The notes: generated by a model not told the origin, from the sequence alone. DNA of 64,000 nt from Rebecca billardiae RCC1528 (GCA_965240325.2 OZ251229.1:744001-808000), one strand, 5' to 3'. Shown: positions 15,843 to 21,234, numbered from the stretch's first letter. Numbers and translations are program-made.

Positions 15843-16782
15843 CTTCTCGCCCGCGTCTCACTCCAGGCCGCGGGCCCGGCCCTCTGCCCACTCACGGTGA
15901 ACACGACCTTCTCAAGGGGCTCGCCCTTTAGCACGCCGCTCGTGGCTCTTTCACGAGTACCCAAGGGCGTTCCCGGGATCCTGCCACACGCTCCTGAAGA
16001 CCTGAAAAGCAAAGCGCGCCCCCGCTGCGGGGGCTTTGCCTTTTTTCGTATTCAAATGTACCCGCTTCGAATGGAGAAAGCTCGTTTCAATAGGAAGGTG
16101 GTTCAATTTGGCGAATGACCAATGCGGGGAACGCCCCTGGCGTGAGTTTGATCAAGAGTTCGTCCCTCCGCCGCCGCCGGGCGGGCGCCGGGCGGCCTTC
16201 GGGCTTCGGCGCACTCGGATTAATCAAAGCGGTCGGGTTACCAGTAGGTATAATACCCTCATTTCATTTATGGAAGCTTCCAGTTGCAGTATGACAGCAC
16301 CTGTTTGGGTCGTCGTGGAAACGAAAACGACGTCGACGGAACTTCCCTCACACAAGCACAGCGCGAAGGCGCCGCTCTCAGACCCGACGGGTAATTTTAT
16401 TATTGCCTTCGAAACGACATCAGATACCCCCTTCCAACCGTCTCATCTTCTGTGCATCCCGAATCTCACGATCGCCAGCGATCGCCACTCGCAATAATCT
16501 TCATCACTAATCAGGCGGCGGCGGGCGTTTGATGACTGGCTGTGAGCTGTGATGAGGAGGACCCTTTGACGAACCGAACCGCAATAAATAGGCGAGCGAA
16601 GACCGACTAAGGTTTATGAGTTACGACGACGACGGCTCGTGTGGTTGTTGTAAGAAAAATAAGGTCGTATCTTCATCGTAGAAAGGTCGAAAGGAAGAGA
16701 CAAGAGTCGCGACGAGCTTTTCTGCGACGCGGGCCCCCTCGCCAGGCGCTCACGAGCGAGCCCAGCGGGCGCTGAGCCCGCG

Positions 16783-19614
16783 ATGCTCGGGGGTCGTGCC
16801 GCGCCCACGAGTCTGAATGCCTCCGAGCCGCCCGTCTCGCTCGTGCTCATCACCGACCCTGGCCCGGACCCGGACGACGTGAAAGCGCTCATGGCGGCGG
16901 CCATGTTCCACCAGCAGCAGCGCGTGCAGCTGGCGGCGGTCATTTGCAATGGCGGCGGCGCGCCGCGTGAGCGCGCGCGACTGGCTGCGTGCGTGCTCCG
17001 GCACATGCACCTGGACGACGTCCCCGTGGGCATCGGCAGTGCCGGCACGCCTCGCACGGCGCTCGAGCACGAGTACCGGCTCGACGGCTACGGCGAGACC
17101 GTCGGCGCGCCGCTGCACGACGGGCTGACGCTCCTGCATGGCGTGCTCAGCTCGGCGGCGCCCTCGTCCATCGTGATGGTGTGCATCAGCAGCCTGCGCG
17201 ACGTCGCCGACGCGATGCAGGCGCACACCGCGCTCGTGATGAGCAAGGTCTCGCGCGTGATTGTGATGGGCGGCCTCGAGCGCGCGCACGGCGACACCGG
17301 CGGCGCTGGCGACGCTGATGCCGACGCGCCGCTCCCGCCCCCGCCCGGCGCGGCGGCGGCGCCGGTGCCGCCGCCGCCCTACGCGCCGTGGCGGCCGGAC
17401 AGCGCGCAGAACAACCAGTTCGACGTGAGCGCCGCCGAGTACGTGTACTCCTTCTGCTTTGAGCGAGGGATGCCGCTCACGGTCGTCGGCCGGCACGCGG
17501 TGCCGCTGCTGCCGATGCAGCTCGCGCGCTCGTTCGCCGAGCGCACGGACTCGGCGCTCATGCGCTACCTCGCCGACGCGCAGTTCCTCGGCCTCGAAGG
17601 GCTGTGGCGCCGGCTGTGCGCGGGCGAGCTCCCCGCGCGCTGCACGAAGCAGTGGTACTTCGAGACCTTCTGCGGCATCGGCGCCGAGCAGTTTGGCGCG
17701 CGCGGCTACGACGCGCTCGGCGCGGACGCGGCGATCAGCACGTTCCTCAACGGGTACGTGAAGCCGTACGACGTGGTCGCGCTGATGGCCGCGCTGCCCA
17801 CCTTCAGCGGCCTCGGCGGCGACTCCGCCGACTTCCTCTGGCGGCGCGTGCGACACCGGCTGCTGCTGGGTGCCGAGCACGCGCCCGACGTGCGCGAGGT
17901 GGCCGAGCTGCTGCGCGCCGCGTACCACCACGCGGTGGCGCTGGGCTCGCTGCAGTCGTCGGCGTCGCCGGACGGCGGCGGGCGCCCGCCGATCCTCTTC
18001 GGCCGGCTGCGCACCGGCGGCGCGGCGGAGCCGGCCGACGCGACGACGCTCGCCTCGTCCATCGCCGTGCTGAACGGCAGCGGCGCATATGGCAGCACGC
18101 AGCAGGCGGGCGCGCGCGCGCCGCGGCGGTCGGTCAAGCTGGTCGCGGCGGAGGAGGTGGGGACGAAGGTGCGCGAGGACTTCCTCGCCGCGGTGGACAA
18201 GGAGCGCACGCCGTCCGCGCAGGACCCGTCGCTCCCACGGCTGCCGCGCTCGCACCGCAACAGCGCAACGTCCAGCATCGGCGCGAGCGACGCTTCCGCC
18301 CAGCGGCCACCACTCCTCGGCGGCGCAGCCGCACCCGCCGCCGAGCACCGGCCCCCGGCTGGCCGCGGCGCTGCTGGCAGCTCGGAGCCGGCGCCCCCCG
18401 CGGCGCCCGCGCACGCGCCGGCCACACCGCCCGCCACGCGGTCGGCGACGCCCCTCGCGGCCTCGCGCGCGCCTCCCCCCGCGCTCCTCGAGCGCTCGCA
18501 CACGGGCCTGAGCACGCTGAGCGTGCACAGCGACCTGGCCAGCTGGAGCGCGATGCAGCAGCACCACCACACCGAGCCGCCCGGCCGCATGGCGGTGGCG
18601 CGGCTGCTCGACGGCGCGCTCTCGCAGGCGATGCGCGTGCACCGCTGGGTCGCGAGCGCGCTGCTGCTGCTCGGCGGCACGGGCTTCGCTGCCGTCGAGG
18701 CCGCGCGCGTGCTGCGCTGCCTGCAGATTGCTCTGCCCGGCTCGGCGGCCGTCGGCTGGCCGCGCGCCGCGTCGATCGCGCTCGACGACCTGGACGACAT
18801 GCTGCCCGTCGCGTCGGCGGTGTGCCTCGTGGTGGCGCTGCTCGGGCAGCTGCCTGTGCGCGAGCACATCTGGGCCGCGCACGCCGTCGCCATGCTGCTC
18901 GGCGCCTCGCTCGTCGCGCACACGCTGGTGAGCGCGTCGCAGCTGGGCGCGGACGGCAGCGGCGGCGGCGCGCACTGGTGGCACTGGGCGCTCAGCACGC
19001 TTGCCAACGCGGCCGTGGGCGTGTCGCTCGCGCGCGCGACCGCGCGGCACTCGCAGCCGGCGCCCGCGCACCTGGTGATCCGCGCGGTGTGGCGCTGCGC
19101 CGGCGCGTGGATGCTCGCCTCCGCCGCGCTCGCGCTCCTCGGCGCGTGGCTGCTCCCGCCGCGCGGCGCGGGCCCGCCGAGCGCGCCGTGGGCGCGCGCT
19201 GGCTCGCTGCTGCTGCTCGCGGGCCTCTCGCTCTACCCGCCGTTCCAGGCGAGCCTGTACGCGCAGCTGGTGCGCGCGCGGTGCATCTCGGGGCAGAGGC
19301 ACGTCGTGCTCGCGCCGCTGGTCGGCTTCGGCGCGGCGGAGGTCGCGGCGGGCGGCGGCAGCGCGCTGCTCTCGCGCGCCGAGCGCCGCTGCTTTGCGCT
19401 CAAGCTGAACGCAGCCGGGCGGCGCATCCTCGGCGCCGAGCTGATCGGCTCGGTCTCGGCGGTGGCCGAGGGCGGCAAACGCGGCGGCTCGTGCGAGAGC
19501 TCGCGCGAGGGCTTGCGCGGGGGCTCCCCGCGCGTCTCGAAGCGCAGCACGCCGCCGCCCTCAGTCGCCGGGCTGTCGCACGGTTGGCCCTCAACCGAGC
19601 GCGACCTGGAGATG

Positions 19615-19687
<73 letters not shown>

Positions 19688-21234
19688 TGGACGGTGGCAG
19701 CTCGTTCGGCTCGTCCACGAGCGCGGCGCTGCAGGCGGCGGCCGGGCTGCGGCCTGCGGTGAGCCCACTCGAGCCGGTCGCCGCATCCGAGCAGGGCGCG
19801 AGCCGCGCCAATCCCTCGCCGATGATGATCGACGCGGCTGACGAGCCGCCGCCGCGCGGCCACGGCCGGCAGCGCGAGCCGCGGGCGCAGCGCGGCGCGG
19901 CCGCGCGCGTTGCGGCCAGGGTGCTCAGCGCCCCGCGCCACTGGGCGCTGGCTGGGCGCGGCTCCGCCCGCCGGCCGCCGAGGCGCGGCCACGCGTCGGC
20001 GCACCGGCTGCAAGACGACGAGCGGGACGACAGCGGAGGCGGCAGCACCTCGAGCCGCGCGTCACCTTCCGAGGACGGGCGCGACAGCTTCAAGCGACAC
20101 AGCTTCACGCGAGCGGCGGCGTCACGCAAGGCGGGCTCGGAGGTCTCGATGCGCGAGCTGGCGCGCTCCATGCCGGCCTCGCCCGACGGGGTGCCGGTGG
20201 CGGGCTCACCGGCGCAGCACCGCTCTCCGCTCGGATCGATGCGCTTGGCGCCCTCGCGCCCGGCGCCCTCGCTCGACGGCGCGGGCGGGGCCTTGCAGTG
20301 GCTTCGTGACGAGGCCGTGCGGTGCCGGGCATGGCTCGGAGGCGCGCGCCACCGGTCGCCGCAGAGCAGCCCGCAGACGGGCAAGCGGCGCATGTCGACC
20401 AGCCTCTTCCGCCTCGCGCGGCTCGATCCGGACGGCCCGCTCTCCTGGTTCGGCCGCGCGGACGCGAGCGGCGTCGACTGGTTCGTGAGTCACTGCGTCG
20501 ACGACAGCGCCGAGGCTCGACTCGCCGCGCTCGACGCGTGGACGCGCTCCTCGCGCGAGACGCCGAGCGTGTTCATCGACTGCGCGTGCATGGCGCCCGA
20601 CCTCACGCCCGAGGACGCGCTCGCGCTGCGGCTCGTCGCGCTCGCGCGCGCGCAGCGGCTGCTCGTGCTCTGGGGGCCGCACTACGCCTCGTCGCTGCTC
20701 TGCGTGATGGACCTGGTCGCGTGGGTCGCACTCGGCCGCTCCCTCGACAGCGTGGAGGTGGTGGGCGCGATCGCGACGCTCGACGACGCGCACACGGCCG
20801 TCGCCGCTGTCGACGCCTTCCACGTCGCGTACGCGCGCCCGCCGACGAAGCGGGCGGGCGGCTCGGAGGAGGTGGCGCGCCGCCTCGCGCTCGCGTCCGA
20901 CCTCGCCGGCCCGCGCGCCATCAACCGCCTCGTCACCTCCTTCGCCAGCCCGATGCTCGACCTCGCCATCCGCCAGCGTGAGCTCGACGAGGGGCACGAC
21001 GACGGGGACTCGATCTCGTCCGACGATGACGGTTACTCGGGCAAGCACGGCAGCGTGGACCTGGAGCAGTCGCCGATGATCGGGGGGCACCGGAACGGGG
21101 GGAGCTTGCAGGTGATGCCGGCTCCCAGTCCCATCGGCGCACGCCGTTCCAGCTCGCAGTCATCGCCATCGGGGTTGAGGATCCACAGCAACATGATGCC
21201 CCAGTCTCAGGGCGATGATTCCGCCGGCCCGTGA
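16783..21234 (+). CDS. Nucleoside hydrolase-like domain + multipass membrane region + degenerate TIR-like domain (1483 aa, one ORF)
   Basis: LITDPGPDPDD, VPVGIG, VIVMGG, AQNNQFDVSAA and KPYD match the IU-NH fold. About 6 hydrophobic segments at 18640-19260. C-terminal DWFVSHC..VFIDCAC..RLLVLWGPHYASSLLCVMD. Confidence 0.8.
19614..19686. repeat. (GGC)n encoding a poly-Gly tract
   Basis: Direct reading; in frame within the 1483-aa ORF. Confidence 0.95.

Follow-up and report, generated by a model that had tools for sequence, protein, structure and literature searches.

A XopQ/HopQ1-like hydrolase, a six-helix membrane block and a divergent TIR domain in one protein of the alga Rebecca billardiae

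Architecture of the gene and its family

The window considered here, to which all positions refer, is a stretch of 64,000 nucleotides from Rebecca billardiae RCC1528 (GCA_965240325.2 OZ251229.1:744001-808000). The gene at 16783-21234 encodes one membrane protein, in which a XopQ/HopQ1-like hydrolase is followed by a block of six transmembrane (TM) helices and a TIR domain (Table 1). An initial annotation, made from the DNA alone, had proposed that a nucleoside-hydrolase fold and a TIR fold are united in one membrane protein. This architecture is borne out by Pfam and XopQ matches, by the TM block and by structure searches with the TIR domain. The motifs that it had listed as kept are also in place, with TDPGPDPDD at aa 24-32, MGG at aa 162 and NNQFD, which had been written as NNxFDxxAA, at aa 210-214.

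Table 1. Features of the gene and of its divergently transcribed neighbour (positions in the window)
Feature	Position	Strand	Basis
Whole gene	16783..21234	+	single-exon open reading frame (ORF), 1483 aa (stop included), without internal stops
XopQ/HopQ1-like (HopQ1-like, HLP, clan) nucleoside hydrolase, aa 19-395	16837..17967	+	Pfam PF01156, NCBIfam XopQ model, PDB XopQ matches
TDPGPDPDD metal loop, aa 24-32	16852..16878	+	motif position
Ca2+ motif D25-PGP-D29-P-D31-D32, non-canonical DXXXDXDD	16855..16878	+	kept in 28-30/30 relatives
NNQFD ribose-pocket motif (N210, N211, D214)	17410..17424	+	26/27 aligned relatives; aligns with XopQ 'aynnatDi'
Y329-D330	17767..17772	+	D330 aligns with XopQ D399; kept in 28-29/30 relatives
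Linker 1, Ala/Pro/Ser/Arg-rich low complexity, aa 396-601	17968..18585	+	not alignable among paralogs; coding GC3
Six-helix TM block, conserved, aa 602-834	18586..19284	+	AF2 model, profile matches in other species
Juxtamembrane helices with A-x-L-x-G-x-G (query LAPLVGFG), aa 835-885	19285..19437	+	alignment A2
Linker 2, low complexity	19438..20466	+	not conserved among paralogs
Poly-Gly tract, 24 residues, in linker 2	19615..19686	+	run of 24 glycine codons
Divergent TIR domain, aa 1229-1401	20467..20985	+	AF2 model m3d6fd88d3a70, Foldseek, VIA-align
SHCV, aa 1236-1239	20488..20499	+	motif position
End of strand beta-A, H1237 ... D1241	20491..20505	+	conserved family positions
D1310 (GAC), catalytic-Glu column, helix alpha-C	20710..20712	+	family column counts; context ...SSLLCVMDLVAW
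Seven-transmembrane (7TM, rhodopsin-type) - HET-like 'SHRW' - leucine-rich-repeat (LRR)-like tail gene, 1003 aa	12831..15842	-	Pfam 7tm_1, Atlas
Shared intergenic region, 940 bp, candidate bidirectional promoter	15843..16782	.	GC 0.57 vs ~0.7-0.8 in genes

The window has a GC content of 0.59-0.80, and long empty ORFs are common in it because it is so rich in GC. Within the gene frame, the GC content at third codon positions (GC3) is 0.82-1.00 in each block of 50 codons from start to stop, and the GC content of the flanks falls to 0.50-0.57. Coding-level GC3 throughout, together with this drop on either side, therefore indicates one exon and one gene. The same signal also runs through both low-complexity linkers, which thus look coding in that frame. 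It has to be weighed whether the long frame merges two or three genes, or hides introns, so that the fusion would not be real. Such an artefact is favoured by the local GC content of 0.67-0.80, at which long spurious ORFs abound, by the low complexity of the linkers and by the presence of introns in some paralogs. It is nevertheless hardly credible, given the uninterrupted GC3 signal and two further observations. The same order, in which the hydrolase precedes the TIR domain by 2-5 kb on the same strand, recurs at no fewer than about 54 loci of the genome. In addition, the transcript-derived Pavlovales proteins P0004 and P0012, both labelled 'type:complete', carry all three parts and support a single mRNA in relatives. 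Around the poly-Gly tract, the neighbouring frames of both strands hold poly-Arg or poly-Ala/Pro ORFs, which are shadow ORFs.

The gene belongs to a Pavlovales family that is defined here as 'HLP-6TM-TIR', where 6TM denotes the six-helix block. The 72-Mb genome contains at least 84 matches to the TIR domain and at least 166 to the hydrolase domain. Long relatives, with identities of up to 53%, were found in Diacronema lutheri, in Pavlovales sp. CCMP2436 and among MMETSP transcripts; most of them carry the TIR domain and many carry the 6TM block too. An exhaustive profile search of the public protein library returned 2353 cluster representatives at E<=1e-3; at E<=1e-30 there were 138. Among the top 135 representatives, 32 match the hydrolase and TIR profiles, 20 the 6TM and TIR profiles, and the remaining 83 the TIR profile only; this last group includes short fragments as well as proteins with hydrophobic segments ahead of the TIR domain. 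All three profiles are matched by the query and by 22 of the 135, and 10 more combine hydrolase and TIR with hydrophobic segments in between.

The hydrolase domain and the membrane block

The N-terminal domain passes Pfam PF01156 with 40-43 bits against a gathering cutoff of 34.2 (E 5e-10 to 6e-11). The NCBIfam model of XopQ gives a score of 86.6 bits (E 1.4e-24), as compared with about 40 bits for the general Pfam model. The curated cutoff for a XopQ equivalog (NCBIfam NF041355, bacterial effector) is 500 bits, well above this score, and on sequence grounds the algal domain is a relative of XopQ and no equivalog. In a sequence search of the whole PDB, XopQ entries alone were matched at E<=0.01 (4kl0, 4p5f and 7jlu, E 9e-19 to 1.5e-15), and none of the canonical nucleoside hydrolase structures reached this threshold. 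The alignments to XopQ cover the hydrolase in two stretches, aa 11-170 and aa 205-341.

The calcium motif DXXXDXDD defines the HLP clan, as opposed to the canonical DXDXXXDD (PMC11685791, PMC6019455), and the domain carries the HLP form. The initial annotation had read it as a generic inosine-uridine nucleoside hydrolase with a damaged His-Asp, written YD. Instead, an HLP-clan domain is present with the full set of Asp, Asn and Tyr-Asp residues, and the Tyr-Asp taken for an oddity is normal both in XopQ and in 29 of 30 relatives. In the PDB search, the query segment kpYDvvalmaalp aligned to lnlYDpltllaalp of XopQ. Counted on the alignment to 7jlu, with a chain index offset of 13, D29 and D330 correspond to D120 and D399 of XopQ; these two algal residues are kept in 29/30 and 28/30 relatives, respectively. 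The XopQ double mutant of D120 and D399 is inactive (preprint 10.64898/2026.06.15.732069). Of the 30 relatives, 26-30 retain each of the nine residues of the metal site and ribose pocket (D25, D29, D31, D32, N210, N211, D214, Y329 and D330), and because of this conservation the domain looks like a working XopQ-type enzyme.

A preprint of 2026 reported that in 2'cADPR, a TIR product, XopQ cleaves the O-glycosidic bond between the two ribose units, giving ADP-ribose (ADPR), and that it is inactive on nucleosides, 3'cADPR, cADPR and pRib-AMP (preprint 10.64898/2026.06.15.732069). By analogy, 2'cADPR might be a substrate of the algal domain. The XopQ/HopQ1 effectors (4KL0, 4P5F, 7JLU) share with it the fold subgroup, DXXXDXDD, NN..D and Tyr-Asp in place of His-Asp, but they are secreted bacterial proteins, whereas the algal protein is a host membrane protein fused to six TM helices and a TIR domain. 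HLPs with the non-canonical calcium motif have been described as a separate clade in heterokont and haptophyte algae (PMC6019455). The hydrolase domain fits this clade, although that paper covers the hydrolase domain only and makes no mention of TIR, TM or architecture.

A housekeeping function, with a membrane-tethered enzyme of nucleoside salvage and a C-terminal domain that is a structural relic outside any signalling, would agree with the placement of the N-terminal domain by Pfam among inosine-uridine nucleoside hydrolases. It is very improbable. The PDB sequence matches are to XopQ only and the calcium motif is of the non-canonical HLP type; moreover, a salvage enzyme would not be expected to have dozens of divergent TIR-fused paralogs or to be conserved as the partner of a receptor-like gene. 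The reading preferred here is that the hydrolase acts on a TIR-type signal and would be the working enzyme of the fusion.

Open frames of great length (1799-2360 aa), absent from the TIR matches, also contain XopQ-like domains, at G000 C7:2969285-2970220, C16:1320597-1321610, C23:523441-525546, C27:158043-158540, C12:2177296-2178213 and C15:880884-881360. The frame on C23, of 2228 aa, contains the domain twice. The XopQ-like hydrolase thus seems to be a module that is joined to partners other than TIR too.

Hydropathy places several hydrophobic stretches at aa 620-860. An AlphaFold2 (AF2) model built on alignment A2, which comprises 30 sequences of the membrane region, reached a predicted local distance difference test score (pLDDT) of 84 and a predicted TM-score (pTM) of 0.82. 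It shows six long helices (aa 602-650, 661-687, 693-723, 729-755, 762-790 and 802-834) and then three short ones. The A-x-L-x-G-x-G motif sits in the short helices, and its columns A245, L247, G249 and G251 of A2 are near-invariant. The 6TM profile matches other species with E-values down to about 1e-43. No known fold was matched by the model, the best hit having E 0.5 in Foldseek against the PDB and TM-scores of at most 0.42 against the Atlas. The hydrolase and the TIR domain are both predicted to face the cytosol, because there are six TM helices, no signal peptide and a large N-terminal domain ahead of the first helix. By the AF2 helix limits, five Lys and Arg residues lie on the inner side and one on the outer side, which lends weak support to this topology.

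The conservation of the 6TM block and of A-x-L-x-G-x-G across species goes beyond the needs of a mere anchor. This would suit a sensor coupled to an effector, in which the XopQ-like domain binds a nucleotide with slow or no turnover and gates a 6TM pore, channel or membrane-damaging effector, while the TIR domain only assembles. In bacterial TIR systems, a ligand-binding domain is frequently combined with a TM effector. Such an arrangement is rather unlikely, since the 6TM model has no match to a known channel or pore, the predicted outer loops of the block have just 5-11 residues and 21 of 22 relatives retain all catalytic-type residues in the hydrolase, which fits turnover better than binding.

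The TIR domain and its catalytic column

Alignment A1 comprises 38 of the own-genome TIR matches. The AF2 model based on it has a pLDDT of 90.6 and a pTM of 0.84, and it shows a fourfold beta-alpha order typical of TIR domains, with additional C-terminal helices. In Foldseek searches against the PDB, TIR domains take all of the first 27 ranks (best E 7.4e-5, prob 1.0), and the matches include SNC1, RUN1, RPV1, RPP1, RPS4, L6, Roq1, SARM1 and AbTir. The independent all-against-all aligner VIA-align gave MyD88 TIR (Z 9.9), SpbK, SARM1 TIR (9.6), IL-18Rbeta, ThsB (9.5) and TRR-2, all between 9.9 and 9.4. The TIR-like character that had been assigned to about 20470-20960, and that a different fold would have contradicted, is thus upheld by structure prediction and by TIR matches leading both searches, with the folded domain now set at aa 1229-1401.

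Sequence models are less sensitive to this domain. Pfam gave no family for it, even at E 10, the TIR models PF01582 and PF13676 included. TIR_2 was matched by 2 of the 38 paralogs at E 0.008, with no Pfam TIR model at threshold, and remote family members were likewise found below the threshold of TIR_2 or TIR (P0218 at E 1.7e-4, P0213 at E 0.015). The Diacronema relative P0230 bears the UniRef name 'TIR domain-containing protein'. A search of PDB sequences with the A1 profile yielded no significant match, but a weak alignment to a Toll-like receptor (TLR) TIR domain (E 0.62) hits both hallmark motifs, DAFISYSEHD with DAYVVHS..D and SPSFVNSCWCQYELY with GPT....L.C..EL. Nothing was found when the TIR region of the full protein served as query in a word-based search, because this copy is too divergent. 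Since predicted structure, motif alignment and the transitive sub-threshold matches agree, the C-terminal domain is concluded to be a divergent TIR.

The initial annotation had noted SHCV where SHxW was expected. The SHCV is there, but the expectation does not hold, as SHxW is the motif of the HET-like domain of the neighbouring gene and the rule in this family is (V/L)-H-(S/A/C)-x-x-D. Among 41 own-genome copies, H1237 is present in 39, D1241 in 40 and V or L before the His in 38; a Trp at +2 of the His occurs in just 7. The family consensus D-R-L-W-C-V-x-E-L-Y-x-W is the classic TIR motif, and the A1 profile aligns its Glu with the E of TLR 'CWCQYELY'. This copy reads S-S-L-L-C-V-M-D-L-V-A-W. 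Family alignment thus places D1310 at the catalytic Glu, in agreement with the Asp reported there initially, and L1306 at the Trp of WCxxEL, so the WCxxEL-type Glu of NADases in helix alpha-C is absent from this copy. Plant RUN1, RPS4 and RPP1, SARM1 and bacterial ThsB and AbTir share with the domain the fold and the order of elements, and the family consensus has their type of Glu. Differences from these catalytic TIRs are the Asp and Leu of this copy, the extra C-terminal helices and the model length of 187 residues, compared with about 140-170 in the matched TIR structures.

The catalytic column is variable in the family. The 41 own-genome copies have E in 16, R in 9, Q in 5, G in 3, A in 3, D in 1, T in 1 and other residues in 3, whereas E is found in 19 of 25 proteins from other species. 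With a profile built without it, this copy scores lowest of the 41 (145 bits against 165-252). In a maximum-likelihood tree of 66 TIR domains, from which the catalytic column was left out, the state changes between Glu and non-Glu at least 13 times, and in a well-supported clade of 12 paralogs every member carries Arg or Gly. The sister of the query domain is P0014 from another organism (SH-aLRT 97), at 36% domain identity. P0014 also has Asp in the column, and FVSH, VLWG and L-x-C-x-x-D are common to both. The conservation of unusual residues between two lineages argues for an Asp-type TIR that would be a maintained subtype and not a product of decay. The suggestion of a private pseudo-domain therefore fails, as the consensus of the family is catalytically canonical and the Asp is shared with P0014. 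Of the earlier alternative, dead or repurposed as an adaptor, the second half is the most plausible reading.

It is also conceivable that the protein is a self-contained maker and breaker, in which the Asp-type TIR still cleaves or cyclises NAD+ and the hydrolase of the same chain processes the product to give a self-limiting pulse. The TIR fold is well formed in the model, the Asp keeps the carboxylate and is conserved in P0014 as a working residue would be, and most relatives from other species retain Glu. On the other hand, many paralogs carry R, Q, G, A, V or L in the column, so TIR catalysis is not required for the family, and the Trp of WCxxEL has been lost from this copy too. In glycosyl-transfer enzymes, replacing a catalytic Glu by the shorter Asp usually brings a strong loss of activity. 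A maker and breaker in one chain is considered unlikely, though worth weighing. Among the 22 full-length relatives, the nine hydrolase residues are intact in 21 and the TIR Glu is present in 13, which makes the hydrolase, and not TIR catalysis, the constant part. This agrees with the preferred reading, in which the TIR domain docks and the hydrolase acts. The family provides a natural series of Glu-, Asp-, Arg-, Gln- and Gly-type TIRs on an otherwise constant hydrolase, which could show which TIR functions need catalysis.

Two observations on individual paralogs may be added. L027 (G000 C3:525000-530000) is the sole full-length member sampled with a degraded hydrolase pocket; it has SPGADPSD for DPGPDPDD and YG for YD, and Gln in the TIR column. 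Three near-identical TIR copies (L030, L032 and L035, at G000 C1:1215321, C7:2748091 and C17:1153431) lie on three different contigs, with tree branches of 0.009-0.036, and all have Gly in the column. They point to a recent dispersed duplication of a non-Glu subtype.

The paired neighbour and the proposed role

The gene is arranged head to head with a gene for a receptor-like protein. The 7TM region of the neighbour matches Pfam 7tm_1 (E 2.7e-12), and for its SHRW domain the nearest named Atlas cluster is 'heterokaryon incompatibility domain' (score 0.93). This HET-like domain, at about aa 465-680 of the neighbour, combines SHxW with a W-I-D..C..Q.D / R-x-W-C-x-x-E pattern. A HET identity (PF06985) was also considered for the C-terminal domain of the query and rejected, with no Pfam match and a best E of 0.33 in BLASTP against the neighbour's protein. 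The two belong to distinct families, whose relationship is no closer than the superfamily level. The 940-bp region between the genes may act as a bidirectional promoter.

The gene of P0014 sits on the 6.6-kb genomic contig L061 (run DRR621826). Divergently upstream of it, at L061:1-2022 (-), an ortholog of the neighbour was found, with 43% identity over 683 aligned residues (E 9e-172). Judged from these alignments, the head-to-head pair is conserved between two organisms in which protein identity has fallen to about 43-46%.

Taken together, the data have led to a proposal that stands about midway between acceptance and doubt, namely that the hydrolase breaks or converts a TIR-type signal while the Asp-type TIR docks. 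Like XopQ, the hydrolase would cleave a ribose-linked bond in a TIR-made messenger of the ADP-ribose type, 2'cADPR or a relative, and would thereby end or convert the signal at a membrane. The Asp-type TIR would have little or no NADase activity and could serve in docking or oligomerisation, recruiting the hydrolase to signalling assemblies of the TIR/HET type. The paired receptor-like neighbour would be the prime candidate partner for this docking. The size and turnover of the family might fit a role in conflict or immunity.

Several points weigh against this proposal. The likeness to XopQ is at the clan level only, and the substrate may differ from 2'cADPR. D1310 is equated with the TIR Glu from motif and profile alignments and from its position in the helix, and the carboxylate of Asp could still support catalysis. 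Elsewhere in the genome, co-location of the two families is not significant, since a paralog occurs within 20 kb at 2 of the 12 further HET-like loci (P ~0.1, an estimate). On C27, a candidate pair of a HET-like locus and a paralog was discarded because an ORF intervenes. The complex predicted for this TIR domain and the HET-like domain of the neighbour scored 0.00, which may be listed here, yet it is evidence neither way.

A two-gene unit has also been envisaged, in which the 7TM-HET-like-LRR receptor, when bound by its ligand, would make an NAD-derived ribose-linked messenger, and its partner would dock through the Asp-type TIR and cleave or convert this messenger. Such a unit is regarded as quite unlikely. 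If it were true, XopQ-type enzymes would be native to TIR/HET signalling in eukaryotes, with the bacterial effector as a copy or parallel of a host 'off-switch'.

The fusion of hydrolase, 6TM block and TIR appears to be undescribed in the literature searched, and appears to be a new architecture of known domains. When cADPR, nucleoside hydrolase, TIR and 'fused' were required together in a full-text search, the XopQ preprint was the sole result, and it does not mention algae or eukaryotic homologs. In the haptophyte Gephyrocapsa huxleyi, multi-TM or TM-anchored TIR proteins are induced in virus infection, and a function in antiviral signalling has been proposed for them (PMC12489294). In these proteins an intracellular TIR with a conserved Glu comes after N-terminal membrane regions; the proteins belong to another class of haptophytes, and no nucleoside-hydrolase domain is mentioned for them (PMC12489294). 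The fusion of a XopQ-type domain to TIR in dozens of algal host genes provides independent genomic 'guilt by association' with TIR signalling, and it suggests that eukaryotes use XopQ-type enzymes to shape or end TIR signals. The conserved partner gene offers a concrete two-component system for study in an algal group about whose immunity very little is known.

Some details of gene structure were observed on L061. In the ortholog of the neighbour, an intron appears to interrupt the SHRW motif. The P0014 gene was called from a later ATG, and an upstream exon at L061:2181-2530 reads M..LVLITDPGPDP and appears to be joined over about 270 bases to DDVKALL. The calcium motif of P0014 thus appears to be intact but intron-split, with a donor that seems to start with GC and not GT.

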